A stretch of DNA of 62,293 bases, taken from assembly GCA_964252035.1 (NCBI GenBank), contig CAXUOO010000179.1; one strand, written 5' to 3'. Shown here in pieces: positions 1,619 through 54,908 of the stretch. Below the pieces are notes generated by a model, which worked only from the letters and a program-made list of their open reading frames with translations, had not been told where the DNA came from and did not search any database. This DNA is from Podarcis erhardii. Lineage: Eukaryota. The position numbers were made by a program, and so were the translations under genes. Numbering within the stretch: the stretch's first letter is position 1; each line of letters starts with the position of its first letter.

Positions 1619-2175
1619 CTACAAGGGCGTCTTTTCAACATTCTGTCGGTCACACAACTTTCTCCTGTTTTTTTTCGATTCTTCTCCATGTGGAATCATA
1701 TTCAAGGGCAATGGTGGAGGCCACAACGTCTGCCATGCTATATACTCTGTATCGTCTTCTTTTTTTTGAGCAGGTTCCACTAACTCATTTTTCTTCCTAG
1801 AGTGCGCATCTGCTGCTGGTGAAACAGAATTTTGTACATGTAAATATTCTGCGGGGGCTAGTTGAGAGGGGTGACAATCTACAGACACTTCAGTTGAGGG
1901 AATCTGTGTATCAACTTTGACACCACTTGCACCCCCGCCTTCTACTCCTTGCTTTGCGCCACTCTTTTGACTTTCCAACGCAAGTGGCTGCAATGGCTGT
2001 TGTTGCTGTTGCAGATACAATCGCTTAAGTTCAGTAGCGTGAAGCTTTAGTGCAGGCGCATGCATAGCCCCGCCTGTCATAGCAATTTCTCTGCTTCTTG
2101 ATGCATATGCAGGATAAGCGGCAAGGGAAGCGAGCAGATCAGACCGTTGTCTCGCCCAGTAATCTACCTCTAAGC
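1619..2175 (-). CDS. DEAD-box protein, exon 6 (terminal)
   Basis: Acceptor gtatatag|GC (phase 1) gives NAP-G-LEVDYWARQRSDLLASLAAYPAYASR, open to TAG at 1619. The six exons sum to 8001 nt, which is divisible by 3. Confidence 0.65.
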
Positions 2176-3407
2176 CTATATACAGCAAATAGAAACACAG
2201 GGAAGGGCTAGGAAAAAAGCGACTGCTGCGTTGGTGCCGGTATTTCCTTGCTATTGCGACTTGTGCAGGTTTTTCTTTTTCCGCTGCTGCTGCTGTGGTT
2301 GCCTTTTACTGTGTTGTCGCTTTCTGCTCTTGGTGCTGATGTCAAGTCTACTGGACTTGCTGCTGCCGCTCTGTTTTCAATCAGTGCTGCGCTACCTGTT
2401 AGTGCTCATAATCTATCTCTAATTGCCTTCTGATCATTTATTGCGCATATAAAGTGCCATGCAACTGCTGTTGCTGCTGCTTCTTCACCCTGATGCTGCG
2501 GCTATCCTACCGACAAAATACCGTAGTAAGGCATACCCAATTACTACATCATTGACAAGAAAAGCCGCTATGGTAGGGAGTAAACAAGAACATGAATCAG
2601 ACAAAACAGTGCACCTATCTGTCTACATAGACGTAATCTGGTACAACAGTCACTTTGGACTGTCGAAGTTCTCAACCTTCTAGCCTGCTGCTCTAGTGCT
2701 GACACCCACAGTTACAGTCTTTTTTAATTATCACATTCATACTGACAGAATATAGAGAACGTCCACGAAAGTTGAAGTGCTTCGCAATGCTGCGGTGTAT
2801 GCTGCTGCTAGTGCAGTTCATTTTTGTGCCGCATGTAGAAAAGAGGCTCTAGTGTGTTTCTTTCTGCTACCGTACACATTATATATATATATATATATAT
2901 TTGTACATGTATAAATATACACATATATATGTAAAGCAGCATATCTGCACTGTAGCAGAGCAGCCTCGACTGCCACAGCAGCAGCAACTTAGATTACGAA
3001 GGCAGCAGCAATCGTGAAAGTATGGCAGCAACTGCAGCTACATCTATAGCAATAATAGCAAAGACAAAATCAAGTACCGAATGGCAGCCACAAATACAGT
3101 ACTACCAAGTTAGTCACCGCCCAAGAGGAATTGGCACGAGCCAAAAAAAAGAAGGTCAAAGAAGTCTTCAGAATGAAACTTCAAGCTACAACAGCTATAT
3201 ACTGAGTGGTATATGTTCTTTTCTTCAATCTACACACATACAAAATATGCGCTCTGTTTCAGAGCCAGCAACTGACGTTCAAAAGACTTTTTTCATTGAT
3301 ACTCGGGCCACCGAAGAAATATGCGCTATTCGGGACAATATGAAAGAGAGCTCATGCAATATACAAAAACATATATATATATATATATGCGTGTATGCAG
3401 GAGTTAC

Positions 3408-3517
3408 CAGGGGCATTGAGCAGCTGCAGACGAGCAGCAAACTGCTTCGTCACAGCAAATTGTTCGGTAAGTCCAAAAGAAGTTAAAATCGCCTTTACAA
3501 GAGAGGGAACTTGCCAT
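3408..3517 (-). CDS. DEAD-box protein, exon 5: C-terminal extension
   Basis: ttgtcag|A TGG ... CCT G|GTAACT, 110 nt, phases 2 and 1 match both neighbours. Encodes WQVPSLVKAILTSFGLTEQFAVTKQFAARLQLLNAP, resembling the CTE helix-G-l-x-x-x-P-helix-L-x-L pattern. Confidence 0.75.
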
Positions 3518-3833
3518 CTGACAACACACATAAGTATACGCAAGCTCCTTGATGCAAAAAATATGTAAACAGAATATCGCATACGTAGATAGCATCTTGA
3601 GTTAATGAAATACAGAAACGGAATAGCAACTGACAACATTTTCATGCACTACAGAGGTGTATACTATAATTCTATATGTATATTTACACAGAGAGAGACT
3701 CGAGAAGAAACGTGGGCTACGAATCTGCCAGATACCAAAGCAGCTTGAGATGAATTCATTCACATAATCGAGCATTCTGTTCTACACTGTCATTCCTGCT
3801 CTACGATAAGTTCAATCCTGAATTACAAAGATC

Positions 3834-3872
<39 letters not shown>

Positions 3873-4570
3873 TTATAATCATGTACTACCTTAAACAGAG
3901 TATCTACTCATACATACTCCTAAAATATGCACCTTTCTATATTTATGCTGATGAATATCTACGTCCGTATGTACCCCTTTACATACATACAAGTGTATTT
4001 TTAAAAAAAAGTAAGTACCCCTTTGTATACGTATACGCATACAAAATGCATATTGCTTATATACAATCTATGAAAATTTATCTTCTTCAAAATTGGTGTA
4101 TATATATATATATAAGTGAGTGTTTATTACTCTGCAAATCGTGCTATACAAATGTACTATATATATAAAAATATACAAAGTGAATTGTGTGTGTAAGGGT
4201 GAAGTTCATTCCCGTAGATGCGCAGCCTGTTAGTGTAAATTCCTCAAAAAGCTACTTGCAACCAAATGAAGAGCACTATTTCCCATCTTGTACAAGTAAA
4301 GCATATATATGATATGTTTAAGTAATAATATCTCCCGAAGATCAACTGATCAGAGTCATAAACCTCAACAGTTCTGACGTTTGTGAAAAAAATCAGGGAG
4401 GTTTTCCGCAATATCCAGTTGAAAACCATAAATACGTTCTACGTGATTCGACAATATCACCATACTGATGAGATCAATGTTTACGTGACGCTTAGAAGAG
4501 AGGAAAGCGAATCCAGGTACAAAATGAGGTATATATCGCTAGTTTTCACTAATCTATATATCTACACCTA

Positions 4571-4608
<38 letters not shown>

Positions 4609-5225
4609 CTTATGAGGATGTATAGACAAATACGCGAGTCTCTAGCACTTCAGCGTCTTCCATGCGCTGATTATACACAGGGCCGTATACGATAACTGCA
4701 TCCAGGCAGGTGTATGCAGAGAGCTAAAGAACTTCTACACAGATACATATACATATGTTTACGTATGGGTTTCCTGTGTATATATCGATCTAGTTACACA
4801 CTAAATGCAGATATATTTATACATATATGTATATATATATGTATATATATATCACAACGGTATGACTTTGTTCGTAGGTTTTTCTATCTGTTTCAATAAG
4901 CTGCTGTTTTTCTGGTGCTTTCGCCCTCTATTGACACAAATATGCAGGACTCTTTCTTGGCTTATACCTGCTATTCCTACTCCTAGGATATACATTTGTT
5001 CTTCTGTATCTACATTAGTATATATGCATAAACGTTACTGCTCGTAGAAAGCATGTGCACAGCGCCTATCATACATCTATTTTTTTACCTATATCTATAT
5101 ATATCTATATCTATATTTATATACATATTAGATAGCGCTGCAAAAGTTTGTTAGCAGCCGCCGGGCAAAAAGAAGACGTGCATTATATCTTGTATATCAC
5201 GGCTCTGCGTGCTTCTGAATACTAA

Positions 5226-5370
5226 ATCGATTGAGTATAAGTTCGTTCATAGATGCGTGTACGTAGATAATAGAGAGGTGTATACATTGGCTTTTGAATA
5301 CTACATCGATTGAGTATATGTTTGGTCATAGATGCGGGTACGTAGATGATAGAGAGGTGTATACATTGGC
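5226..5370. repeat. Intronic imperfect tandem duplication, unit ~79 bp
   Basis: atcgattgagtat...tagatgcg(t/g)gtacgtagat(a/g)atagagaggtgtatacattggc occurs at 5226 and 5305. Confidence 0.8.
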
Positions 5371-5538
5371 ATGTGTAGGTCGAGATTTGTAGATGTGTTG
5401 TCACAAACAAGTACGAGAAAGTTTGGGCTGCGCTTCGTCGGAAAAAAGTATCCATCTACATGCACACACTAGATAGACAAAGTAGATGTCGTGCACATAT
5501 TTATGTAGATGTTTGAATATTCTAGTGTCGCCTTTTAC

Positions 5539-7380
5539 TTTTCGAATTTGAGAGTTTTCGATTGCATGCTGTAAAACCCCAAAAGACAGCGGTACATCAA
5601 CTCAGCAGAGGCCCGAAGCGGGGGCAAAGCGTCTTCCCAGCGAGGCAGCGCTGTTGTTTCCAAAACAATCTCATCACTATCTTTTTCAGCCACAGCGAAA
5701 GTAAGCTCATCAGCATCCGCAGCAGTCATTTCTTTTGATTTCCTCTGCTTTCTCTCTCTAAATTCAGTCATTTTTTTGTGCGAATCTGCAAAAGTTTCGG
5801 TCCGTGAACTTTTCACCGGTGCTGTCAATGCTAGCGCTTCCGCTTCTATCGTTGCTGAATCAACAAGTATTGCGCCTCCTCCTGTGGCGTTTGCACTTGA
5901 TTCTACCGCCACGCTTGCAGTGGATTCTGTCGTAACTATTGCAGTGGATTCTGTCGTGATTGCTGCAGTTAAATTTTTTGTGCTTGCTGTAGTTGAATCT
6001 TTTTTTGTGACTGCTGTAGTTAAATTTTTTGTGCTTGCTGTAGTTGAATCTCTTTTTGTGACTGCTGTAGTTAAATATTTTGTGCTTGCTGTAGTTGAAT
6101 CTTTTTTTGTGCTTGCTGTAGTTGAATCTTTTTTTGTGCTTGCTGTAGTTGAATCTTTTTTTGTGCTTGCTGTAGTTGAGTCTGTCACCGCGTGTGCTGG
6201 TGGTTGCATGGTGAGTGTATTTTTCGCAGCGAGTTGAGTCGCCAGCAGCACTGCTGCGCTTTTAGTTTTCGCTACTTTGTGTATTTCGCTTTTCGGCTCC
6301 GCTCCTGCAGGCCCAACGGTCGTTGCTGGTGTTGAAGTGAGTGCTTGGATTTTATGATCAAAAACAGCAGCAACGGTGTCTGACGATTGCGCTGCTGCCG
6401 TTGACGTAGCAGTGCTCCTCTCACTAGCAACAGCGACGTCATTGTCGAAGTTTCTATCCTTCTTCACTGAGCCGCCTTTTCTATTTCTCTGCAACATCCT
6501 CATCATCATTATCATGCGTGGTTGACGCTTTCTTCGTCGCAGCAGCAAAGGTCCACTTTTTCGTCTTTTTTCCACCTGTTGTGCAGGCAGGGGTTGCATG
6601 CGCTGCTGTTTTGAACTGCATTTCTGTGCAGACTTGGTCCTCAACTGCTCGAAAAACTGCCGTTGTTTGCTTCGCAATCGCCGCGCTAACGAAGCTCTTG
6701 TTTGAGGGCCACTCAGGCGTTTGTTTGCAGCGCTGTAATTCCACGCAAGAGGAAGAAGCTGCACTTGAAGAGCAGTTTGCTGGTGCTGAGACGAAGTGCA
6801 GTGGTTGTTTTGCCCCAGCAAGTGGGCTGTTGAAGAAGAACTCGCCTTCTTTTTCCGCTGCTGCTTCCTCCGCGTCGGGCGCCTCCTTGGAGCCCCTGGC
6901 TGCTGCAACGACGAAGGCTGCTGCTGTGGGGTGTGAAACTGGTGCTTTTTCATCTGCTTCAACGTGGTTGACTGGTGAGTGGGTGGTTGAGACTGGCTTT
7001 CCTTGTCGCTCTTATGCTGCTGCTGCTGGTGGTGGTGGTAAGAATAGTGGACGTAGTCGGAGTAGTGAGTGTTGAGACGAAGTTGTTGGTAGTTTTGGTG
7101 CAGCAGCAGGGCAAGCACTGGGTGAGGCTGCAGCAGTGACAGCGCCTCTGAAGCTGGCATTTCTGTCAAATGAGGCAGCCCTGCTTCTTGGCAACACATG
7201 TACAAAAAGTGAGCTTCTAAATCGTGCAGAAGCAGCAGTGATTGTCCAGGTGGTTGTCTCTCGTTTTCTGCTTCTGCTGCTGGCAACAAAGCTGCTGATA
7301 TGTTTGTTTCACTCTTTCTGCTTGCTTCTGAAGACCAACTAGCAGTAGTAGTGGTAGATGAAGAAGTTTCGCCAGATTTG
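5539..7380 (-). CDS. DEAD-box protein, exon 4: post-motif-VI segment, large insertion, start of C-terminal extension
   Basis: The ORF 5535..7403 begins with TTG, not ATG. Acceptor aaaaacag|C at 7380 is phase-compatible with exon 3. GQSLLLLHDLEAHFL matches the post-VI G-x-slllL-x-x-E-x-x-fl element. ASAELMYRCLLGFYSMQSKTLKFE matches the Mss116-type CTE (AY..wLGYY). Donor AA|GTAAAA. Confidence 0.75.
5961..6183 (-). repeat. Coding minisatellite: 27-nt (TTASTKKDS) and 51-nt (TTASTKNLTTAVTKKDS) units
   Basis: Near-perfect tandem units visible in the sequence and the translation. Confidence 0.9.
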
Positions 7381-9730
7381 CTGTTTTTGCACAGCAACCG
7401 CAAAAACTCACGCAGGTGCTCTCTCTTTCACATTCAGAAAAAAAAGCGGCACAGATCTGTGTGTGAAGCACGTGATGACGCAAACACTAGGCACGCAATT
7501 ATATACACAAATAGATTCAAAGTCTAGTTGGTGCATGGAGGAGGAGGATGTCCTAATCGTCTATACTTATGTGTTAAAATGTAGTATGCTAATAATAGTA
7601 GTTTTAAAGGTTCGTGCAGTGAAAAATCCAGATTCGCCTTTCAGCGAGCCATGGAAACGTGTGTTGTTGGGTTCAACCAACTACTATGCCCCACACCACG
7701 AAAAACACAAAATTTTTCGCTTTTTCATGCAAACTTGCTAGAAAAACTTCTAAGGCATCTGACACGTAAATATCCACACACGTGCAGACGTCTTCAAAAT
7801 TATGACCCAATATACATGTATTTACAGTATTTGCAAGCGTGGTCGTCAAGCATCGCTGATCTGCCATATATACATATATATACATGTATATTTGTATACA
7901 TGTGCGCTGAGATTGTATGAGGAATTGCAAGTAGTTTGCGCTTGTTGAGAGAGAGAAAAAAGCATTACACGACTATTTTAGAAAAGGGTTTTCACAAATA
8001 CATTAGTGACAACACTACATATGTAGATACTACTTTTAGAAGTGGGGACAAGCTGATGATAGAGACGTGTACATACATGTATACACATGTATGAATACAT
8101 GCATACACACACATGAACACATCTCGTGGTGGTGTGAATTCGAACTGTTCGTGTAGTAGCAAGCAGGTGAAATGTACTTATTTGTGTCACCAAATTTTTT
8201 CACCTATATAACTTGCAAATTGGTGGAGAAGCCAGAGACATACATGTTTCTTCAAAATAACAAAAACTATGCTGTGAAAAGTTACAGAACAAAGAAATAA
8301 ATGTATATATAGTGGAAGGCTGCGCGCAACAACCTTTGAGACTGCTTTCTTCTTTTTTTATGAGGAAGCAGCATATACAGTGCAGAAGTAGGAATATTTG
8401 CAGAGGCAGAAGAAGTAGCAGCAGCACTGTAAATATCAGCAGCAATAGAAGTTTCCATAGCAGCCTGAATAACAGAAGCAGCTCAAAATGGAAGTAGCCC
8501 ATAGAGAAGACTAGCGACTTGTACAAAAAAGAGCTTGAAAACAGTGACAGCAGCTCATATAGAAGCAAGTCCACCCACCATACAAAGAAATAACACACCG
8601 TGATAGCAGTAGTAGCAACTTTACTAGCAGCACATCAAAGAACGAATAAAAGCAGAAATTGCTTAGCGCACTTAGAGAGCAGCAGGGCAATTTTTATAGA
8701 TAAAAACAGCAGCGCAAATAACAACAGCATCACACACAGTAGTAACAACTGAAATAGCAGCAGGAGCAGCTTCAATAAACAGTAACTTGCATGGAAGATA
8801 CAAAACACAGTAAAGCAACTGCAACAACAGCAACAAAGAAATCTGAAAGGGCAATATATGAATAGCAACAGCAGCGTAGATGGAACAGCAGCAAGTAAGC
8901 AACGATACAAAGCAGCAGCCTTAACACAAAAAAGTGAAGAACTTTAGTTATGAGGCATCAAAACACCACGAACGGAGCTGAAAGAAAGCGACTTTTGAAG
9001 CCACCACCACCCCTATTGAGAAAACTTTCAAAGCGTTCACGCAAAGAAGCTGAGCAACGGACGTGAAATTTTCTCGAATAAACTATGATATATCACTGAT
9101 TGAGACACTTAAAAAGCAGTGATTTCCACTGGCAACAGAAGCAAGGAGCCTAAACAGAAGAACTGTGGCAGAGGATTGCCGCAGCAGCAGCAGCGGCTAG
9201 CTGCAGCAAAAATAAGGAAACTTCTATTCAAGTTGTGTGGTTTAACGAAGACCGTCACAATTGAATAGAAAAGTTCGGTTTTCGAAAACAGCTAGTAAAC
9301 GACCGCTAGTACAAGAAAAAAAAAAAGAGCATGAGAAGGTGTAGTAGACATTCAATTTTGCTCGTAGAACAGCAACAAGGCCAGAGAAGCGAAATCAAAG
9401 GAGGAGCAACAAAAAGGCAGGTGTTGAGATGAAGCAGAAGAAGAGACAGAACAAGATGTGAGATAGAGAAGGAAAAGAACAGCAAGACAAGAGCAGCAAC
9501 AGCACACTTCAAAACATTCAGACATGCACTGTTGCTGCTAAAACAGAGAGAGAATGCTGCTGAAAAAAAGGCGTTGCAGCAGTGACAAGGCCGCCAGCAG
9601 CAGCAACAGCCAAAGAAAAAAAGAAGCAGCAACTTTTTAAAAGACAAAAACAGCACACAAAACAACAGCGAAAGAGCCGCTACAGCGAAAAAACACATAG
9701 AAAGAGCAACAGTCCTCGCTAAAACCTCAC

Positions 9731-9801
9731 TGCGTCTGCAGATTCCCTTGAAGACGGGTGACTCGTTGCACGTACGTGTCTACACTTTTAGGAATGCCCA
9801 C
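9731..9801 (-). CDS. DEAD-box protein, exon 3: degenerate motif VI
   Basis: Acceptor ctgctcag|, translation VGIPKSVDTYVQRVTRLQGNLQT (compare VGxPxxxxxYIHRxGRTAR), donor CA|GTGAGG, phase 2. Not in the ORF track because it is too short. Confidence 0.75.
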
Positions 9802-10627
9802 CTGAGCAGTAAAGCATTAAAAAAAACCACTGTTTCATTAACGGAAAAGCAAAACAACAGATGCAGCATAAAAATCAAGCAGATGCATCCAAAACTGCAG
9901 CGAAAGCGCAAAATCCCACCAAAATCTGCTCTCATACGAGTCGAAAAAGCTCAACAATCAGACGCACAAGCGATATCTTACATATATATATATATATGCG
10001 CACAGATGTAGATGTATACAAGTATCTATAAAAGTTTAAAAGTAAGGTATATATGCATACACGTATATACATATACATTAAGAACTACGTATGTCGATCA
10101 TGTAGAAATGCATGTGTACTCATATGATAAATATATATGTATCTCTATTTGTATTAGTTACGATCGCGAGATTCTACTGATGAAGCGATAGGCTTTTTGC
10201 ATAGCGAAAAAACCACAGTTTGCGTATTTTGATCTGAAATGGCAGCAAATGAAACTTCAGAGAAAAGAGATTCGTGAATTAGTGGTTCAACTGAAGCACT
10301 AGTAACATGTATATGTACACATGCACATTGGGGAATGTACGTCTGCGTAGAAATGCTTGTCATATCTGCCTGCGAGTTTTCTTCGTTTTTAGATGTATAT
10401 GTATATATTGATTGAAGTCCAAGCAAGTGTGCATGTGTATCCTTTTGTTCATTCAAATCTGTCCTAGCACACACTACACATTACGACTGAGTAAATTCTG
10501 GAGTGACGGATGTGCATGCCACATATACATGTATACATATGTATGGATGGACGACTTTTCTGTAGAAATACAGGCATAAAAAGATATGCAACTGTACTCA
10601 TATATAACAAAGTTCTTATGCATCAGC

Positions 10628-10684
<57 letters not shown>

Positions 10685-10686
10685 AC

Positions 10687-10758
10687 GTGCATCAATGATT
10701 AGGCGAAAGAGACTATGTTTAAAACGAAACAAGTCAGTACAGATCAATATTTCAGCTA

Positions 10759-10807
<49 letters not shown>

Positions 10808-10918
10808 ATATATATATAAATACAGGTGCATCAATGTTTAGGCGAAAGAGACAATGTATAAAATGAAATAAGTCAGTACAGATCAATATACAGCCAAACA
10901 TATATATATATATATATA
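10687..10918. repeat. Intronic imperfect tandem duplication, unit ~139 bp, ending in (TA)n
   Basis: gtgcatcaatg(a/t)ttaggcgaaagagac...aagtcagtacagatcaatat occurs at 10687 and 10826. Confidence 0.8.
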
Positions 10919-12010
10919 TTTTATTCAAATGTAAATGTGTGCCTAGACGTGAGGACTTTACTGGAAGACATGCGAGAGCAGCTGCAGATGTTGCAAAAAG
11001 GAAGTAAAGAAAATGCTTTTTTTGTGAAACTTCGAATAATAATAATAATTTGAGGCGCTTTTGGAAAAAGAGTATTTTTACAAACTTGAGGACGAGCCAA
11101 GCAAAGAAAGAAAGAGACAGAGCGTGAGAAATGGACTGCAAATGCAGAATTGGAAGAAAGTTGAAAAGCCGTTCGTAGAGAAATGGCTGTTTAAGGAGGA
11201 AAAGGAAGGATACAAAAGAGGCAGAAATTTCAAAGAGAGAAAACCCCTAATAGAGCACGAAACACCACAAAGAACAGAAAAGAACAGAAGGAGGCGCAGA
11301 GAGCGCTAAGAGAGACAGAAGGAATTTCAGGTAGAGAAAGAGAGAGTATTGCAGAAAGGAAGAAAATCGAGAAAACCAGAAAAGAGGAAAGGCTGCGCAG
11401 AGAAGGAAGGAAAACTCACAGAAAGAAACAGAGAGAAGAAAGAGAGGTCTGGAGACGGAGCAGAGAAGAGAAAAAAAGGAAGACGAAGAAAGGAGGAAGA
11501 GTGGTGCCACCACCCAGAAGAAGGGCGCTAATGAGAGAATCGTCGAGAGATGTACACAGCAGACAAAGACGCAAACGAAAAGGCAGACAGAGAGAGTCAG
11601 AGACAGCAAGACGAAGCTTTACGAGAAGTTGAAAAAGAGGCAGGTTGAGCTTGGAGCGCGGATGGTCGAGTTCTTTGGATGAAAAAATGAGCCCGACATA
11701 TGAAATGAGAAAAAAAACACGTCAGACACGCCACAGATCACAAAGAAACTCAGCAAACAGAGAAGGGGATCGACATTTCCAAGTTTTCGAGAGGGAGAAG
11801 AGGAAAAATGCGAGACTGAAAAATTCAGGTGACATTTTCAGCTGAAAATGATGTGAAAGTCCGCGTGAAGAAACAAAAAAAGAAAGTCGAAAGACAGAGA
11901 CAGCGACTGGTGGAAAAAGAAGCGTTTGTGCGCACACACACATAGATACAGTGCGAAAACGGGTGAGACGTACATGTACAATGGAGTGAACGTGTCCAAA
12001 ATTGAGTCAC

Positions 12011-14532
12011 AGCTGCCAAATCAGTTGCAAAGAGGAAGCGAACTTCAGGTTTTTGAGCGCTCGTTTGAGCGCTGCTGCAGCTGTAAGAACTAACGGCGCC
12101 GTTTTTGCTTTCAATAGTAGTAGTGGTAGGAAACGGGCCTTCAAGACGACTACTGCTCGTACTACTACCGACACCACCAGAGAAAGCATCGCGCCCAAAA
12201 AAAACTCGAGAGATTGTGCTTTTCGTGCTCTCCTGCATGCAACTGTCTCTGCTGTTGTTGTCACCACTAGGGAGCGAGTGAATAATCTGCAAGCTGCTGT
12301 CTTTGTGGACTTGGATGTTTCTGCTAAGTGTGCCACTTCTTCCCTCACTGCTATAGTAAACGCTGCTAGTAGAACTTTCACAGTGAAGTCTTTCCTTCTC
12401 GCTGCGGCTAGTGCGAGTGCGAGTGCTGTTGTCTTTCTTGTGGGGGCAGAAACTGCGCAAATTCGAGTTCAAAACATTTCTGGATTTGTACGTTTCATCA
12501 GCAAAACCTTCTACGGCAGCTCGTCGCTTCTCCAAAGAAAGTCCATGATGCAACGCAAACAGGCGAATGCGCGTTTTGCCTGCTATTTCTGCAGCAGGTG
12601 GTACGAGGAGAGGAATAGTTCCGCCTTTTCTAGCAGCAGCTTCAGCAGACGAAGAATCAGCAGTGAGTGAAGCAGCAGTTTTTTGAGTGCTCCCACTCGA
12701 GGCAGTCGCAGGATCGTTAGGCAACAACGGAGCAGTTTCACTTGAAGAAAGAGAAGAAGGCGTTATTGCAGCGAGAGAGATATTACAGGAACTGTTTGAC
12801 GAGTGATTCGGATCCTTTTCAGCACCACCAGAGGAAAGGGGCAGTGTCTGTTTCTCAGCAGCGGGGGAGTGGAAGCTAGCAGCAGAAAAGGCTTTTTCTG
12901 ACATCAAGTCGACAGGAAAACTCCTCTTTCCCCCGCAACTGCTGCTGCTGCTGTGACTGTTGTTGCTATCCTCGTTTTCACTACTGCAGTTATTCAAACT
13001 CCCTGCAAGAACTGGCGCCTTCGTTGCTTTTGGGGTGTTTACGAGGTTTTCTGCTGCCTGCAAAAAAGCAGGCTGAAGCAGAAGGAGACGACGGAGCAAG
13101 GGCAACAGGAAGGACTTGAAGAACACGTAGTGAAATTGAAGGGTTTTTAAACACGAGAAGAAAAAAATGACTCGCCTAACTGGAGCGTGTGTTTCTTCAC
13201 TCGAACGAAAAGCGGCGTGTTGTGAGCTATTAGCTTTCTCCACCACCACCGTTTTCATCTTCTTCTGCACTTCTCTCGTTGATGCCCCCACCCCAAAGTT
13301 GAACTGCAAATCAGCTGCCCCTGCCTCGCTGTTGTTGTTGCTAGTGTTTTCACCGTCTCTTGCGAGTTTGCATGCTTCTTTCGTTGAAGTTTTCACGGGC
13401 ACAGCAGACGCTGCCGCTTCACGCAAAATCACGTTGAAAAGCACATGTGCATGCAATTCGGCTGGATACAAGACGTAGTTTTCGACGCTTCTTCTGCAGC
13501 AACTCTCACTAGGAGGCACGGCTGCTTCTTCTGCTTTTTTGTCAGCGGCAGCAGCAACAGTGTTTCGACCAGAAAAAGCGGAGCAACTCGAATCAGGCGT
13601 CAACACCTTTCCTTGAACACCTCTGGATTCAGACTCAGCAACAACCACAGTGGAGGAATCAGCAAGCACCCTGTTTTCTGGAGCACCTTGTACAGACTGG
13701 CGTTCTGTTTTTTTCGCTCCGTTCTTGAAGAGGGAAAACTCGCTTTGCAGACGCTCTTTCTCTGCGTTTTGAAGAACTGAACACACAGACGCAGCAGCGT
13801 CTTCGCTCTTTCCCCCTCCTGAAGCAGACGCCTGAGTGCAAGACACTGCACTCTCTTTTTTTGGTGAGAAAAAAGAAGGCGAACGATGGTTGCTTTTCGC
13901 CTGCGCACTCACGCGCGTCTTCTCCTCCGCTAGCAGTTGGACTTGCTTCTCGGTGAGTTTCTGCTGCGCAAACGGCTGCTCTTGCTGTGCTCGTTTTCCT
14001 TGTGCTGAAAAAGTCTCAAAAAAAGTCTCCTTTTGCTCGCGCTTTTCCCCTTGAAGAACAGCCTCCTGTGCTGCGGCCTCAAAACTCCCCTGTTTTCCAA
14101 GCCCTGAAAACTGCTGTTGTAACTGCACTTCATTCCGCTTCTTTCGTTGTGACTCTGTGGGCTCCTGTCTCTGCTGAGTTGCCTTGTAGTGTTGGTGCTC
14201 AAACTGCGAGAAATTGTCTGAAAATCGTGGGCAATAGAGTGGCTGCCGCCTTTGCTGTTGAAGTCGCTGCTGTTCAAGACGAAACTCGTGTCGCTTCTTG
14301 GCGAGAAATTCAGACGCTCGTTTGGGGCCCCAAAGAAGGCCCCGCTTGGGCGAAGAAGTTGAGTGGTTGTTGTTTGCAAAGGAAGACTGCTGTTGTTTTC
14401 CCAGTGTCTGCTCTTCTTCACTTTGCTTCGCTTCCAAAGCGTTGATTGTAAAAGCATGCGGACGCATCAGTCGAGTGATTAAGGCTCGTGCATCCACTGG
14501 CGCAAATGCAGACATCAAAATTGTCTGGTGAC
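12011..14532 (-). CDS. DEAD-box protein, exon 2: motifs III, IV, QxxR-like and V
   Basis: Acceptor aaaacag|GT CAC CAG joins exon 1 in phase to give LAP-G-HQTILMSAF (motif III). Then ENYVLYPAELHAHVLFNVI, RRVIFFFSCLKTLQFHY (IV), LFALHHGLSLEKRRAAVEGF and VRFLFATDLAA (V), followed by putative donor GTGACT. The 3' boundary is less certain than the 5' boundary. Confidence 0.8.
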
Positions 14533-16527
14533 CTGTTTTTTCATGTGTGTGCATGCAGAAAAACAAACACGTACGCTCTTTGTATGAACATCTGCGACTG
14601 CTGACTCAGTGGGTTGGATATCGGCAGTGGTTTTGGAACGGAAATCACACCTATGGAAAAAATTATCTCTCTCTCTCTCTGTGTGCAGAGGTTTTTACAC
14701 ATGTACACGGTTCTCCACTACGCCTACTACAAAGCCATTTTTTCGCCGTTTTTCAAACATATATATGCGCCTGTGTACACACATGTATGCAGACGTGGTT
14801 CACAGTTTATGCACAAACAAAAGGCTGTGTTGAAACGGACGTGATGAGCATTTTCATACGCATATACATTTGCATGCAGAAAGTTCTTACTTTACACACA
14901 CACGAACGAATCGGAACTCGTACAGCGAGCACATACACGATCCAGAGCCTCCCACGTTCACATAGACATGCAGAGAAATCAAATATATACGTATGTATAT
15001 CTACATTTGTAAACATACACGTACATGTATATGTTCATCTTCACTTCTTTCATGTGTGCACATTACGTCTGAGCTCTCCCCCATCTCTCTATGACTAAAA
15101 ACACTGTATATTTCGGAGGCTATATCATACATATATACTATATATACATATATATTAGTATAACATGTGCGAGTGCAGATACACGGTCAGAATGTGCTCG
15201 TGTACAACTGTGGAAGATCTTCTTATCATATACATATGTATATGTATACACTATATATATATATATGCGTATGTACAAACTCAAGTGAGTTTGAATAAAA
15301 TAGGCGTTTGTCCGTATTTACACACCGTAAAGGTGCATAGAAAAATATCTCAACTTCGTAGAAACATCAACTTTTGACGTAATAACCGTAGACTTATGGA
15401 TGTACACTTATTTATATACATGTCTGTAATTGCACTGTACAGATTTTGAAATATCAGTGTCGTAGCTGGCGTTGCCCGTTCGTATGCCTGAACCCAGCGC
15501 TGCACATCTTACAAACTTATAAAATTAACGCAGGTGGCGCTTTCAGTAGGAGATCTCCCAAATCGCGACATAGACTACACAATTACTTACATATATACAA
15601 TTCAACAGATTTTGACGTTATAGCTGTTAAATCACTTCACCCTCGTTCTCCATGTACTTCCACATTTCACATATATATATATATATACATCTTGTAGCAT
15701 TTCAGGCATAATTGTGTATTTTTTTATGTGAAGCAACACTTGAGAGTGCTTGTCAGTTGCATTCTGTCACTTTAATGTCACTTTTCACCCAGTATGAGTG
15801 ATCCTAAAATTACTACCAAATACGCATAATTGTAGATACATATGTAGTATACATGTGTATTTGCGCTAAATTACAGTCGCGCCTCGCGAGTGGAATCATG
15901 TACAAGTTGTGAAAAACACTCTTCTTCTTCTATTGGGAGAAAATTTACGAAAAATACATGTGAATATATATATATATATATATATATAGATAGAGAGAGA
16001 GAGAGAGAGACAGTGAGAGCGAGACACATATACAAATTTTTTAAAAAAGTGATACATAAATAGGCAAATTGATGCAGACTTCCATAAGAGCATTTATGAC
16101 GCACAATGATACGTGCACATGATAGGCATATACGTTACAATATTTTTGATATTTACACATATAGTCGCGTATATGTCTGTCACGTATAACCTGATGCGTA
16201 ATGAACATGCTCGAAAGCACAGTCTATAAAAGATTGACTTTTTTGCTCATGTAATATGCAGCTGTTGTACCCTTTTCGCATATTGAAATTTTTTTTGTAC
16301 ATCCTACAAATCTCTGTTCCTAAATTATATACACGTATAACTAGATATAATCTATATGTCTAAGAATATGTATGGCCGTAGATTGGTGTGACTAGCGCCT
16401 AGGCTGTTTTTCTCTCGCGCTATCATTGAGCGTATAGATAGATACACACGATGGCGCGAAACACATGTATAGGGAGTCTCCATGTGGAAGAAAGAGAGCT
16501 AGAACAGGTTGTGTGAAAAATAAGGAC

Positions 16528-19426
16528 CTGGAGCTAGCTGTTCTTTCAAGCGTAGTACACAGCGCATGTGTTGTTCGCCTTCTCTGAGCAAAACAGCTGC
16601 CTCGTCAAGCACCAGCAATTTACATCCTTTCAAACACTCAGCACCCCTCAAAGAGCTGTCACCACTGTTTGTGCTGTGAATCCCCAAACAACTGCCGTCA
16701 TTGCTACTTCCCCCCCTACTGCCACTGCCAGTGCTGCTTCTGCTGCTCTGTTCGCAGCTGCCCCTGTAGCTCTTGCTTCTGTGAAAATGACTGCATGCAG
16801 CACGCCACTCAGTGAAAGCGAGATATTCCTCCAATTTGCCTGGTGTGCAAATCCAGGCAATTGCTTTTTGCTGCTCCAGCCGCTCAAAGGCCCTTCGACT
16901 GCGCTCAGCCGCCCCTCCCTCAGCAGTGCCCACTAGATTTCTCCACTTCCACTTGCTGTTGCTGTTGAGGGCATGCCGCAAACTTGCAGACTGAAGCAAG
17001 GAATGAGTGAGACTTTTCTTTGCTTCTTTCGAAAAACCCAGCAGCAGTGCTTCTTCTCGCTCTGCTGCATCTGCGTCTGCGTCTGCTGCAACTGCTGCGA
17101 CTTGCTCTAACTCGTAGTTGGCTGCATCGAGGAAAGAGCGGCCTCCTACTAGCAAAGCTGTGCGAAATGGAGAATAAAGAAGCAGTTTCTGCAGTTGCTG
17201 GTGTGTCTGCAAAGCCAAGTCTCGAGTTGGAAGCAGAAACACACACAGCGGAAAAACCGACTCAGAGATTCCCGAAACGTCCGTTTCTAACGGCGCCTCC
17301 CTTCTTCGGGTTCCTCCCCTTTCATCAGCTGCTGTTCCTGCTGCTTCTCCTGCTTCTCCTGCTTCTCCTGCTTCTACTGCTTCTACTGCTTCTCCTGCTT
17401 CTCCTGCTTCTACTGCTTCTACTGCTTCTACTGCTTCTACTGCTTCTACTGCTTCTCCTGCTTTTGCTCTAGTTTCTTTTGCTTCTTTGCGCGTGGCCCT
17501 CGTTGTTTTTTCTGCTTTTCTTCTTTGATCATTAGTGACGACTTTTGTTGCTTTAGCGTCAACCCCATCGTGAAGGACACCAACCACTGTGGTTGCTGCT
17601 GAAACTGCTTTTGCGTCAGTCAAAAAAGAAGTGGAGACTAGTTTTTCATTTTCCGCTGCTTCTGTTGCTGCAGCAGCAGTAGAAAGCACAGAAGAAGCAG
17701 CGGCTTCACAGTGAAACACACGAGCAGCAGCATCATCATCGTTTTTATCATTAGTATCCGTGGCCTCGCTGCTCCCAACAGCAACTGCTTCAGCAGTCAG
17801 CAGTTGTTGGCGCCTGAGACTCTCAACTGGCTGCTGTTTTTCTCCAAGAAAAAAGTCTCTCGTCTGCTTCTGCGTCTGCTGCTGAAAGCTCTGCTTGAAC
17901 TGCTGTTCCTTCACCGACAGAAACAGCGCTTTTCGTGTTTTTTCTTCGCCCTCCGCGAGTAGGAAAGATTGTCGCTCTTCTTCAAACTGCTGCATCTGAC
18001 CCTCCTCCTGGTGGTGGTTGTGGTTTGGAGGGGGCTTTTCTTTGAACGTTTGCGCGTTCGTGTTTCGCTTCTTCTGCTGCAGTTCGTCCATCAGAGTCTG
18101 TTTTTGTCGTAATTGTTTGTGATTCTTTGTCGTTGTGGCGGGGCACTGCGACTCCGACTCGTGAGTAGTGAAACACTGCTGAAGACCTTGTTTGAGTGGT
18201 GGAGGCTGGGGCTTGCCTAGTAGTAGTAGAAGTAGTGCCTGATTAGACTTCTGTTTTGGGTGCTGAAGGTGGGGCTGTGGGTGGGGGTCTGGCTGTTTCG
18301 CGTGTTCAGCGTAGAGACGCAAAGCAAAGGCAAGCTGCACAGCCAGGGACTTGCCTGCATGCACGCGAGCAACAAGGAAGAAGTCGTGTGAAGGAGAAAG
18401 CAGCAGAGGCAGCAGCAGCTGCTGCAGTGGAGTCAAGCTTTCCACTGCAGCGACTTTGCGCAGAGCCAGCAGCAGTTCCGCTGGCAGCGTCGGACTTTCT
18501 CTCCAACACGCTCCAGCAGCGTCAACAGCAGCAGCTCTTTTGGCGGAAAGTCCGCACTGCTGCTGCTGTTTTTGCTGCTGCTCCTTCTTCTCTGCTACGA
18601 GCTCAGACCAGTCACCCCTGCTGAGTCGTTTATTCGGTTCTTTTTTCTGATGAAGAAACTTTCGTTGTGGTGGTGGTGGTGGTTGTGGTGGAGGTTGTTG
18701 CTCATGCTCACTAGTGAAGACGCGTTGGCGCGGTTTAGTGGGGGAAAAAGGCAATTCGCTCGTCTGCTGCTGCGCTTGAGCAACTCGCGATTCGTGGGGT
18801 TCTCGGTGTTGATCAGGAAAGAAAAGAAGTTGCTCTTGCTGCTGCTGCAGCAGTGTATTGAGAGACAGCGCAGGTGGAAGGCCTCGAAAACAAAGCTCAA
18901 ATGCACTGCCTCCCCACAAACGCAGCAGTGGGGGTTGCGTTGCAGCAGCTGCAGCGAAGGACTGCGACAGCAACAGCAGCCAGGCAGTGGCTTGTGGAGG
19001 CAACGCTTGCAGCAGACTCTGCTGCAGCAGTGGATATCGAAAAAAAGCCAATATCCTCTTCTGCTGCTCTTCCTGAGCTTGCCACCACCAACCACTAGCT
19101 GCAGCTTGTGCCAGCATCTTATTCGTCACAGACACTGAGACACACTCTCTCCGCCTAGCAGCGCTTTCTGCTAGAGACAAAGGCCTCTTTTCAGCAGCGG
19201 AAATCGCTGCTTGTGTGCTCTCACCAGCAACTGCTTGTGCTGCTCGAGCAGCAACAAACATACACGGCAACTCAAGATTGGCAGCAGACAAACGTGAGTC
19301 AAGGTTTGTAGCGGCAGCAGCAGCAGTTGCTGCTGCAGACGCGCTCGTCAGTCGAGGTGTACCACATGCTTGCAACGAATTCGCTGCTGCAGTGCCCGCT
19401 CGCGAAAACGCTTGCTTTATACGCAT
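16528..19426 (-). CDS. DEAD-box (Mss116-like) protein, exon 1: N-terminus and RecA domain 1 (Q, I, Ia, GG, Ib, II)
   Basis: ATG at 19426, ORF open for 2.9 kb. Motifs in order: Q-like LRKVAAVESLTPLQQLLLPLL; I DFFLVARVHAGKS; Ia FLLPTRDLA; LLVGG; Ib ICTPGKL; II KLLVLDEAA. Donor CCA G|GTCCTT at 16528/16527, phase 1. Confidence 0.85.
17342..17463 (-). repeat. Coding 9-nt repeat encoding (AGE/AVE)n
   Basis: ctgcttctc/ctgcttcta units on the + strand, inside helicase exon 1. Confidence 0.9.
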
Positions 19427-25875: not shown

Positions 25876-26827
25876 ATGGCTTCTGAACAACGCGAATCAC
25901 CTGGGACGGCGAGAGATACAGAGGGAGAAGAAGAAGATCGAAAGAGAAGCGCTGAGATATCGAGGATGCTGACGGATTTATTGTCAGCTGAAAATTCAGA
26001 CTTCTTTGAAAGTTTTTTGAAACAGAGAGTTAATTCTCAGGTGTCTTGGTCTTCTTTATTGGACAGCAAAGTGCATTCGCGGGGAACGGCGCAGCAACGA
26101 AAATGTGTCTCGAATCATCTGCAGAACTCACAGAACAGCAGACCAAAAAATTTTTCACCCGAAGCACATCCAATAACAGTTGAAAAAAATGAAGCAGCTA
26201 CCACTGAAGCACGATCTACTAGGACGACACTAACGAGCTCTTCAGAAGAACTCCTAGCAGCAGCAAGTAGCGGGGAGCCGGCAGCACATGCGAAAGCGAA
26301 TTTTGCAGATTTTGAAGTTTGTGAAACAGGAAGAGCTGCAACAGGAACAACACAGTCGTCAGCAGCATTCACACCAACAGCGGCAATTCCACCAGAGTCA
26401 GCGACAGCACTAAAAGCAACAACTGCTTCAGCACAAACGGCAGCAACAGCAATTGAGGAAAAGCATTTGACCGAAGCGGCTCCAGAGGAGACAGAATGTG
26501 GTTTCAATTCAACGGAGGAAGAAGACACATGGACCTTCTTGATGTGCAGCGAAATGTGTCGCACTATTCTTCAATACCGATATATTTTGAAACAGGAAGA
26601 AATGGGATCGCCTGTCGATCCAGACAGCATAAACGAATTTCTAGCTCAGAAGCAGCTTCCACAGCAGCGGCCAGCAAGTCAGCCGCCTCTTGCACCTTTT
26701 CAATCGAAATACGCTGGCCGTCGGCTCTTGCAGCAACAAGCTCAGGTGTTTTACAAGCTATTTCGCTGCAGAAGAAAGCAGCTGTTGCAGCAGGCTGCGA
26801 AGGGGGAGAAGTTGGAGCAGCTGCCAG
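25876..26827 (+). CDS. KIFBP: KIF1-binding protein (KBP) homologue, exon 1
   Basis: ATG in context gcaaagccATGG, ORF open, donor CCA G|GTCAGT (phase 1) compatible with the exon 2 acceptor. Assigned to KBP by splice continuity, not by its own motifs. Confidence 0.7.
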
Positions 26828-27524
26828 GTCAGTCCCTCAAAGGTTCGTGCTGGATATAGACTTTGTCATGTGGTAGTCAGACGTACTTTCAGACACTAGT
26901 CACACGTAGTCAGACGTACTTTTCCTTTCAATATATACACAAGCTACTACGAGAGCTGTAGCTTTTTTTCTTCTCTGTATTTTACATTTGGCACTATCTC
27001 CTTACACATATTTTTGAACTTTGAAACGCACATCCACACATCCACACACGACGTGTGCGAAGCACAGGGAAAGCTGTTTTTTAGTCAGACACACCTCGTA
27101 TCGTGTAGGAGTGTGTTGGCTTCGTCACCACATTGACGTTCTTTTTTTGTCGCCAACGAAAGAAGCAGCCGTAACTTTGCGTATGCACACACACTTGTGC
27201 AGGTATCGTATGTACGCAGTTCCCATACACATAGATAGAATTGTATCTCTTGCCGAGGAGCTGCGTTGCGCCAGTCATTATTGACAGAATATATCGCGGC
27301 TCTACACATATGCATATGTATACGTAAACGTGTGTATCTACCGTAGACATAAGTGTATCTGTGTTCTTGCAAGTGTCTGTGCATCTACTTGTGTAGGTGT
27401 GGATTTCTCGTACCCTCTTGACTTGCTACGCCGCAGCGACTCTCTCGACGAGTTCACCACGCGAGAACTTTCCGTGAAAAAGTTGCAAAATGTTCTACTA
27501 TTATTATGTGCTGAGTTTTCGCAG

Positions 27525-30292: not shown

Positions 30293-31325
30293 GTGACAAA
30301 CATTTAACCTTTCTCCAGATACAGAAATTGTCGTTGTTTTCAGCGATTTCGGGGAAGGCTGTCAGACAGACACTTCTCGAGTACTGGTTGAGTGTGCAGG
30401 TGTGAGGAGGAGATAAGATTGGAGCTTAAGATTGTACACATGCACGAAAGAAAGAATTAAAGAAACGCCGCAGATATACGGAGTACTGCATCGAAGTTAT
30501 ACCTGTGTCTGCAGTTTGAGGTCTCAAGACGCCTTCACAAAAAAAAGGCCGTTATATCATATATATATATATATGTATATGTGTGGATGATGCAAACATG
30601 TGTTGCTGGGACTGACTCAAACTACGACTACTGTTGTGAGTCACACACAGTGCCTTCTGCTTGAAAAATAAACCCTCCTATTATTATGAACCTCAGTTGC
30701 TCGCACACACCGCTTTCACACACGCTTCATTTTCCACTTCACACATACAAATTTCATACATTTCTCTACTTTTCTCACACACTGCAGCAGCTCCTCAACC
30801 TTGCATCCGGTTCCCATGTAGACAAAATGTACATTTTTATATACATATATACAAATTTTATAGTCAGGCCGCTCCATGCACCTGTGCATATTCAAATCCA
30901 TTTGTACATATATATATATATATGTCTATTTCAGATTGCATTAAGTAATTCAAAACAGTCAATAATTGTTGAGACTTGTTTGTCGAATGAAGTACTCTCG
31001 TAAGCATCTTTCTAGACGCTAATAATACGTAAGCGCAAACAGCCCTATTATATGAACATGTGTAAAGTATATATATATGTAATGTATATGTGCATGTTTT
31101 ACATATCTAGATAGATTTGTACACACATATATATGTACATCCGTAGATTTTTTTTCAACGCGTATGTGTGTATATATACATATACAGATATGCACCTGCA
31201 GAGGCATTATAGAGTCGAACCCACATGTGTGATATATAATACGTATGTGGACATATACAGATGCATTGGTGTTTCTAGAAGACTTAGCGTAGAAACTCGA
31301 CAAGCATTGTATGGATTGCATTCAG

Positions 31326-37249: not shown

Positions 37250-37606
37250 ACTACTACTATCAGTACTACTACTACTACGATTACTACTATTCCTATCACT
37301 ACTACTACTACAACTACTATTACTACTACTACTACTACGATTANNNNNNNNNNNNNNNNNNNNNNNNNNNNNNNNNNNNNNNNNNNNNNNNNNNNNNNNN
37401 NNNNNNNNNNNNNNNNNNNNNNNNNNNNNNNNNNNNNNNNNNNNNNNNNNNNNNNNNNNNNNNNNNNNNNNNNNNNNNNNNNNNNCTATCACTACTACTA
37501 CTACTACTATTACTACTACTACTAGTAGGATTACTACTATTCCTATCACTACTACTACTACTATTACTACTACGATTACTACTATTCCTATCACTACTAA
37601 TACTAT

Positions 37607-54834: not shown

Positions 54835-54908
<74 letters not shown>

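Follow-up and report, generated by a model that had tools for sequence, protein, structure and literature searches.

The contig CAXUOO010000179.1 of the Podarcis erhardii assembly GCA_964252035.1, analysed here over a stretch of 62,293 nucleotides (the window), carries a large gene of the DEAD-box helicase family on its minus strand between positions 1619 and 19426. Four long open frames of 975, 913, 622 and 189 codons follow one another there in this order, and with a G+C content of 45-55% they stand out against the intervening AT-rich stretches with TA microsatellites (31-39%). The only close relatives of the gene are found in Sarcocystidae and the contig is, judged by its sequence, parasite DNA. 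The gene is orthologous to the members of an offshoot of the Mss116/CYT-19-type DEAD-box proteins that extends across Apicomplexa, and its carrier would be a Toxoplasma-related, Sarcocystidae-like coccidian. Members of this family are already present in public databases under generic helicase names; what is new is their recognition as a lineage-wide, motif-degenerate Mss116 offshoot.

Gene structure and relatives

The model of the window gene was built from the sequence, and database searches were run with single exons or with orthologue proteins as queries. Six exons can be recognized; their phases agree at the junctions, which were read directly, and their frames, checked by script, sum to exactly 2666 residues (Table 1). 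An earlier note on this stretch had described an intact and phase-consistent six-exon model of this length. Its coordinates, phases and length are reproduced here, but its junction between exons 2 and 3 is not confirmed and most probably wrong, and a frame break lies at 12010-12007. Four of the five junctions (E1/E2, E3/E4, E4/E5 and E5/E6) are confirmed by the continuity of the orthologue proteins and by the orthologue intron positions. A look-up among sequencing runs traced the stretch to a single run, of unrecorded type and stored as contigs, and to no RNA run. Across the first of them the protein reads ..EQLAPG-HQTILMSAF.., in agreement with ..RLP[AP]G-HQT[IV]FLS.. in the orthologues. The Besnoitia and Toxoplasma loci have the same six exons, including the 19-codon micro-exon that encodes motif VI. 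Each window exon matches the corresponding part of the orthologues, in order, and at the DNA level colinear homology blocks (tblastx) link the stretch between 19033 and 1772 with the loci of Besnoitia, Toxoplasma and Neospora. Agreement of this extent lies far beyond chance. Exon 5 shares 65-78% identity with its counterparts in Toxoplasma, Besnoitia, Cystoisospora and Plasmodium, and exon 6 matches TGME49_267960. At about 2680 residues the predicted protein is longer than its relatives (1136-2002 residues) because of low-complexity, length-variable inserts between the conserved blocks. In-frame tandem repeats occur within such coding inserts, namely (KKDSTTAST)n in exon 4 and (EAV/EAG)n in exon 1.

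When residues 705-975 of exon 1 were searched against 1.84 billion representative proteins, only three matches were returned, all of them coccidian orthologues (E 3e-19 to 2e-14). The orthologues of this first round are Neospora caninum XP_003884059, Besnoitia besnoiti BESB_064650 and a Toxoplasma gondii protein named 'DEAD/DEAH box helicase'. Onward searches started from the Besnoitia protein and then from that of Plasmodium inui. They brought in Cystoisospora suis PHJ24744, counterparts from 14 species or clades of Plasmodium that are annotated as 'DEAD box ATP-dependent RNA helicase, putative', and a single canonical relative of metagenomic origin, P0033. Every apicomplexan lineage sampled (Sarcocystidae and Plasmodium) retains the gene. 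Toxoplasma, Neospora, Besnoitia and Cystoisospora all lie at about the same distance from the window species, and these equal distances, together with AT-rich introns of 2-3 kb, suggest that the parasite is a Sarcocystis-like member of Sarcocystidae. A word-index search with residues 700-975 of exon 1 gave no match, probably owing to the length window of that search. An exact look-up of the exon 1 product in other assemblies gave no match either, and the flanks of the orthologue loci showed no usable synteny with the window. A literature search, in which the gene identifiers used for Toxoplasma, Neospora and Besnoitia were guesses, retrieved no study, localisation or functional record of the Toxoplasma or Plasmodium counterparts. 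The Plasmodium 'parasite-specific helicases' PfPSH1, PfPSH2 and PfPSH3 were considered as the Plasmodium counterpart and rejected; their motif II reads DEFD, DEFD and DEID, respectively, and their lengths differ.

The public gene models of two orthologues can be corrected by comparison. The Toxoplasma annotation (ME49, CM002043.1; locus stretch 8001-15597) divides the gene between two models. EPT28208.1 (1242 amino acids) reads into the intron that follows motif VI, while the 'hypothetical protein' TGME49_267960 (248 amino acids) corresponds to exons 5 and 6 with the C-terminal extension. The Neospora model XP_003884059 (record FR823390.1; locus stretch 6001-13214) seems to keep part of intron 1, seen as extra residues ahead of HQTIFLSSW, and ends with ..LKFDK, although sequence homologous to exons 5 and 6 follows after this end, at about 12497-12682 and 13038-13214. 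Users of these data meet a Toxoplasma model that is split in two, a truncated Neospora model and, in the copy of this assembly, a frame break.

This break lies at the end of exon 2. In Besnoitia and Toxoplasma, for which the boundary was mapped, exon 2 runs thirteen codons past the equivalent of TDLAA, to ...DFIVH/gtaagg, and in these two as well as in Neospora the order is T-D-[LV]-A-A, then T-G, then eleven further codons. At the codon level, the DNA of all three has six bases, ACA GGC (Thr-Gly), at the place where the window has GTGA. Following GCA GCT (Ala-Ala), the GTGA puts a TGA in frame ahead of the next homologous codons. By this comparison the window would be two bases short at 12010-12007, or would have one base too many if the species has one residue fewer. 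The codons after GTGA read CTC AAT TTT GGA CAC GTT CAC TCC ATT GTA CAT/gtacgt, and their product is homologous to LSLGRLDFIVH, VNVGDVDFIVH and VNVGVVDSVIH of the orthologues, that is to the second half of motif V and the next strand. Five of the 11 residues of this +1-frame tail are identical to Toxoplasma and four are similar, and the ancestral donor stands at the ancestral place. The model of the earlier note stays open solely by using the GT within GTGA as a donor, so that 13 residues are dropped, which cover the rest of motif V and the core strand behind it. A separate 39-base micro-exon for these residues was sought between 12011 and 9801 and rejected: none of 60 AG..GT/GC candidates was orthologue-like, and in the orthologue loci the segment belongs to exon 2.

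Table 1. Parts of the DEAD-box gene in the window (positions are those of the 62,293-nucleotide stretch).
Feature	Positions	Strand	Content
Exon 1	16528..19426	-	975-codon open reading frame (ORF); donor CCAG/gtcc, phase 1; R/A/S-rich N-terminus, coccidian-specific N-terminal block (..LRLWGGS..), Q motif, motif I, insert of ~340 residues, motifs Ia, GG, Ib and II (DEAA)
Block ..LRLWGGS..	18893-19033	-	Upstream of Q motif
Motif I	18347-18370	-	ARVHAGKS
Repeat in exon 1	17300-17480	-	(EAV/EAG)n
Motif Ia	17213-17230	-	PTRDLA
Motif Ib	16832-16846	-	TPGKL
Motif II	16595-16606	-	DEAA
Intron 1	14533..16527	-	AT-rich, TA microsatellites
Exon 2, frame 0	12011..14532	-	blastp blocks to four coccidian orthologues; motif III (SAF), conserved block GLWGPKRASEFLAKK, motif IV, motif IVa (LHHGLSLEKRR), first half of motif V (FATDLAA)
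Motif III	14504-14512	-	SAF
Block GLWGPKRASEFLAKK	14279-14335	-	Between the RecA domains
Motif V	12011-12025	-	TDLAA
Frame break	12007..12010	-	GTGA; six bases ACA GGC in orthologues
Ancestral exon 2 end, +1 frame	11974..12006	-	LNFGHVHSIVH, then donor gtacgt at 11973
Exon 3 (micro-exon)	9731..9801	-	VGIPKSVDTYV-QRVTRLQG-NLQT, motif VI; ~19-codon equivalent in Besnoitia and Toxoplasma
Motif VI	9745-9768	-	QRVTRLQG
Exon 4	5539..7380	-	Post-VI block GQSLLLLHDLEAHFLY, long low-complexity/tandem-repeat linker, start of C-terminal extension (AELMYRCLLGFYSMQSKTLKFE)
Repeat in exon 4	5776-6240	-	(KKDSTTAST)n
Exon 5	3408..3517	-	WQVPSLVKAILTSFGL..KQFAARLQLLNAP, core of C-terminal extension
Exon 6	1619..2175	-	End of C-terminal extension (LEVDYWA..DLLASLAAYP..), variable region, conserved W.[ST]L.PPP.P block, basic tail, stop codon

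Motif states, fold and selection

The motifs quoted in the earlier note are all present at their minus-strand places, and their joint substitution is not private to the window copy; it is an old family trait that extends across Sarcocystidae and Plasmodium. This becomes apparent in an alignment of 18 sequences, comprising 17 family members and one canonical protein. Several elements of nucleotide binding are kept, and no residues of the protein are better preserved than those that contact adenine, phosphates and Mg. The glutamine of the Q motif, present in the window as ..SLTPLQ, is an invariant column, and the GK of Walker A is likewise invariant and followed by Ser or Thr. In P. inui numbering Q249, G271 and K272 are invariant in all 18 sequences, and E392 and A393 of motif II are nearly so. 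Motif I of the window, ARVHAGKS, departs from the DEAD-box form AxTGxGKT but conforms to the general Walker A pattern [AG]xxxxGK[ST]. An acidic pair (DE, EE, DD or ED) opens motif II in every family member tabulated, and the TP of motif Ib and the QT ahead of motif III are kept throughout the family.

Other motifs have changed together. Motif II departs from D-E-A-D in that the window has DEAA and the orthologues have EEAA, DDAA, EDTP, DEAY or DEAH; its fourth position is Ala in the window, Ala or Pro in the other coccidia and Tyr or His in Plasmodium. The SAT of motif III is replaced by SAF in the window, by SPW, SSW or STS in the other coccidia and by TCH, TCI or SSI in Plasmodium. Motif V, canonically T-D-x-A-A-R-G-x-D, reads TDLAA before the frame break in the window, has ATG or SAG in coccidia and CQG, YQG or HQG in Plasmodium, and lacks the Arg. 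Motif VI, canonically HRxGRxxR, is QRVTRLQG in the window, QRLTRxxR in the other coccidia and LRTNxxTx in Plasmodium, or LTTNISTS in P. yoelii. In the window and the coccidia His has thus become Gln and Gly has become Thr, and in Plasmodium the motif is essentially erased. Three arginines of motif VI are found in the other coccidia, two in the window (R8 is replaced by Gly) and at most one in the five tabulated Plasmodium species, with none in P. yoelii. Preservation of the motifs that contact the RNA backbone (PTRD[LV]A, TPG[KR]L and motif IV) is good in coccidia and poorer in Plasmodium. Blocks specific to the family are more conserved than the classical motifs, among them GRSLLLL..LE.H.L after motif VI and WQVPSL..SFG..K..A.RL..LNAP in the tail. 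Conservation among coccidia outside the classical motifs is also seen in GLWGPKRASEFLAKK between the RecA domains, where Plasmodium has KLWY.KDAK.F, and in ..LRLWGGS.. upstream of the Q motif.

Hence the description of the gene in the earlier note as having every ATPase motif eroded was too strong, as the Q-motif glutamine, Walker A GK[ST] and the motif II acidic pair are kept family-wide. To call the protein catalytically dead likewise goes further than these sequences suggest, with the nucleotide-binding elements kept and the motif VI arginines retained in coccidia. With the residues of the Q motif, the P-loop and motif II in place, ATP binding is probably retained as well.

The proposal of a DEAD-box fold is supported. 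Exon 1 of the window matches Pfam DEAD (PF00270) with 32.1 bits at a cut-off of 26, the orthologues reach 45-72 bits, and the orthologues also match Helicase_C (PF00271) with 32-42 bits at a cut-off of 23.5. Motifs IV, IVa and V are recognisable in the window by alignment. Exon 1 aligns with solved DEAD-box proteins of the PDB over the Q motif and motif I, over motifs Ia and GG and over motif II; a coccidian profile aligns best over motifs V-VI, with DbpA and Hera (E 3e-8). An AlphaFold2 model of the P. inui orthologue, computed from the 18-sequence alignment, has a predicted local distance difference test (pLDDT) mostly of 60-90 in both RecA domains and the tail, and low values in the inserts. 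In Foldseek this model is matched best by Spb4 (1.5e-15) and Mss116p (6.7e-15 and 7.1e-14, ranks 2 and 4), in alignments of about 900 columns.

That the protein ends in an Mss116-type C-terminal extension, as had been suggested from the window, is borne out by this structural search and by two profile comparisons. The best solved match of P0033 is Mss116 (3e-53), with an alignment that extends into the C-terminal extension, and the family extension matches that of P0033 in hhalign (E 6.6e-6, 34% identity over 71 columns). Exons 4-6 of the window carry the C-terminal extension blocks of the family. Direct reading gives Lys or Arg at seven of the last 19 residues of exon 6, and the Besnoitia and Cystoisospora proteins end alike. 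Pfam CTE_SPB4 matches neither any family member nor P0033. At the other end of the protein, the first 42 residues, with the start codon as predicted, hold four Arg/Lys, no Asp or Glu and no hydrophobic run of the signal-peptide kind. Ancestry and this N-terminal composition together would suggest an organellar, probably mitochondrial, site.

Selection was estimated exon by exon as the ratio of nonsynonymous to synonymous rates (dN/dS, Nei-Gojobori). Between Toxoplasma and Neospora the ratio is 0.50 for exon 1 and 0.39 for exon 2; it falls to 0.154 in the 286 codons of the blocks that are conserved to the window and is 0.556 in 863 linker and N-terminal codons. Toxoplasma and Besnoitia give 0.14-0.19 over exons 1 and 2, with saturated dS. 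The core is under clear purifying selection, and the inserts are fast-evolving yet open. A conserved, functionally shifted helicase relative predicts shared substitutions under purifying selection. Both were named as a check in the earlier note and both are seen, the former in the motifs of Sarcocystidae and Plasmodium and the latter in the conserved blocks, and they therefore support its core idea at the level of sequence comparison.

Activity of the family and integrity of the window copy

Our main reading, to which we give a probability of roughly one half, is that the family, an apicomplexan-wide Mss116/CYT-19-type offshoot, would act as an ATP-binding RNA clamp or chaperone on organellar RNA. 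Its members retain both RecA-like domains, the adenine-reading Q motif, the P-loop GK[ST], the acidic Walker B pair, most of motifs Ia, Ib and IV, the strongly conserved C-terminal extension and the basic tail. What is missing throughout the family are elements that couple ATP hydrolysis to RNA remodelling: SAT, the last Asp of DEAD, the Arg of motif V and, in motif VI, His and Gly. In addition, most or all motif VI arginines are gone in Plasmodium, and the last one is gone in the window copy. By established DEAD-box biochemistry such a combined loss should uncouple or greatly slow RNA-stimulated hydrolysis, and because these coupling elements are lost while nucleotide-binding elements are kept, we favor a clamp or passive chaperone. 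Its most likely mode would be to bind ATP and RNA, with hydrolysis slow or absent, and the RNA would be organellar and probably mitochondrial. As for a pseudoenzyme, the fold and the selection are seen and the coupling residues are lost, but part of the arginine fingers persists, together with the catalytic Glu and the Lys of the P-loop.

Several observations weigh against this reading. The catalytic Glu and the P-loop Lys are present, as are two of the three motif VI arginines in the window copy and all three in the other coccidia, and because these residues remain, real ATPase activity is possible. Pfam Helicase_C gives no match on window exon 2 alone. No helicase is mentioned in the main texts of two Toxoplasma mitoribosome structure papers, and the comparison with mitoribosome inventories that the earlier note had proposed likewise does not place the protein there, as its gene does not appear in the supplementary protein list of one of them (PMC11652630). 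The locus is also absent from the accessible part of the hyperLOPIT tables.

The same residues raise the question whether the protein is a working, merely unorthodox RNA-dependent ATPase or helicase, an ATP-driven RNA chaperone like Mss116 in which the substitutions are tolerated variants. An invariant Q-motif Gln and Walker A GK, an acidic pair of motif II in all tabulated members, a coccidian motif VI (QRLTRxxR) that retains R2, R5 and R8, a core under strong purifying selection and the public annotation of members as ATP-dependent RNA helicases would all be expected of such an enzyme. It is harder to reconcile with the absence of SAT, of the fourth Asp of motif II and of the motif V Arg from every member, with one motif VI arginine or fewer in the five tabulated Plasmodium species and zero in P. 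yoelii, and with the swap of Asp and Glu within the motif II acidic pair of Toxoplasma and Neospora. Mutagenesis of DEAD-box proteins has established that any one of these changes strongly lowers coupled ATPase or unwinding activity. We regard a working enzyme as possible but on balance doubtful.

Two further alternatives concern only the window copy and turn on the frame break. If the GT at 12010 were truly used as a donor, the mature protein would lack the 13 residues of motif V and the adjoining core strand that are named above. Such a junction joins phase 0 to phase 0 and keeps the frame, and its sequence GTGACT is no poorer than other donors of the gene, such as GTCCTT and GTAACT; moreover, the break lies outside a homopolymer and is therefore not a typical long-read error. 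However, the skipped codons and the ancestral donor are conserved as much as the remaining core, the segment is kept in all orthologues, Plasmodium included, and loss of a central strand should unfold the second RecA domain, so that we consider use of this donor improbable. The copy could also be a young pseudogene, with a premature TGA brought about by the frame break inside the conserved core and with a motif VI that is more eroded than in other coccidia (R8 to Gly). Against this, its frames of 966, 840, 613, 36 and 184 codons are open and its splice signals and conserved blocks are all intact, whereas the nearby AT-rich introns close every frame within a few dozen codons, and the gene is retained in every sampled apicomplexan lineage; a pseudogene thus seems very improbable. 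The identity of the +1-frame tail and the ancestral donor could not persist long without selection, and since conservation of the skipped codons equals that of the core in general, the break is either very recent or an artefact of assembly. A sequence error or a very recent lesion is more likely than a real alternative junction.

Returning to the ATP-binding clamp, its significance would lie in the organelle. Apicomplexan mitochondria assemble their ribosomes from dozens of ribosomal RNA (rRNA) fragments, and the responsible factors are only now emerging. A DEAD-box relative that is selected from Plasmodium to Toxoplasma-like parasites is a concrete, testable candidate for such a factor, although a role with fragmented mitochondrial rRNAs is speculative. 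In its boldest form, which we think rather unlikely, an Mss116-type mitochondrial helicase would have turned, early in the history of Apicomplexa and before the split of coccidia and haemosporidians, into an essentially non-hydrolysing ATP-binding clamp that holds or assembles the tiny mitochondrial rRNA pieces, and would now be a parasite-specific essential factor without human equivalent. The family would in addition be a natural experiment on which DEAD-box motifs are dispensable while the protein stays useful.

Beyond this gene the window holds further long open frames on the plus strand. Two of them (327 and 892 codons) lie at 25876-30307 and may belong to another parasite gene. At 51932-62290 long ORFs of 1461, 306, 332, 314, 346, 628 and 217 codons follow one another in changing frames and overlap in part. 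They are Ser/Gln/Ala-rich and of low complexity, and represent either a single giant gene of this composition, interrupted by introns or frame breaks, or a set of composition-driven open frames. No Pfam family was matched by the large ORFs at 25.8-30.3 kb, 37.2-38.1 kb and 51.9-62.3 kb. A run of 142 N at 37344-37485 marks an assembly gap or a masked stretch.

Comparison with known DEAD-box systems

The closest known systems are the mitochondrial DEAD-box RNA chaperones Mss116p of yeast and CYT-19 of Neurospora, with which the family shares two RecA domains and, behind them, a basic tail that follows a helical C-terminal extension. In the structural search with the Plasmodium orthologue model Mss116p ranks near the top, and Mss116 is the best solved match of P0033, the canonical relative with the same extension. 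However, Mss116 is an active ATPase with canonical motifs Q, I, II (DEAD), III (SAT), V and VI, while the family lacks the fourth Asp, SAT, the motif V Arg and the motif VI His and Gly, and unlike Mss116 it carries inserts of hundreds of residues. To our knowledge apicomplexan mitochondrial genomes contain no introns, so that the classical splicing substrate of Mss116 is absent. A precedent for a DEAD-box core that acts as a long-lived ATP-bound RNA clamp, and not as an unwinding motor, is eIF4AIII in the exon junction complex. There the motifs are canonical and the clamped state is held by partner proteins, whereas in the window family the coupling motifs themselves are changed. The nucleolar Spb4/Has1/DDX18 group also resembles the family, as it supplies the top Foldseek and language-model neighbours and has a C-terminal extension after the core; its members, in contrast, are canonical enzymes of cytosolic ribosome assembly, and it is their Pfam family CTE_SPB4 that finds no match here.

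Two proteins of Toxoplasma come close in their biological setting. TgmRHel (TGGT1_313240) is an essential mitochondrial DEAD-box helicase described for coxI 5' processing and rRNA accumulation (bioRxiv 10.64898/2026.05.29.728635). It is, like the product of the window gene as we read it, a nucleus-encoded DEAD-box protein for apicomplexan mitochondrial RNA, but it belongs to the DDX5/Dbp2 subfamily, has all canonical motifs and is not an orthologue of the window gene. The second, mL169 (TGME49_266110), is a DEAD/DEAH-box-domain protein listed among the mitoribosomal large-subunit proteins of Toxoplasma in a supplementary table (PMC11652630). It exemplifies a DEAD-box fold used as a fixed RNA-binding part of a fragmented-rRNA mitoribosome in the same organisms; it is encoded by another gene, has 867 residues and shows canonical APTGSGKT, PSRELA and TPARL in the part that is printed (PMC11652630). 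If the family described here is indeed a clamp for rRNA pieces, mL169 would not be the only protein with a DEAD-box fold recruited to the problem of fragmented rRNA, and this family would supply the second.

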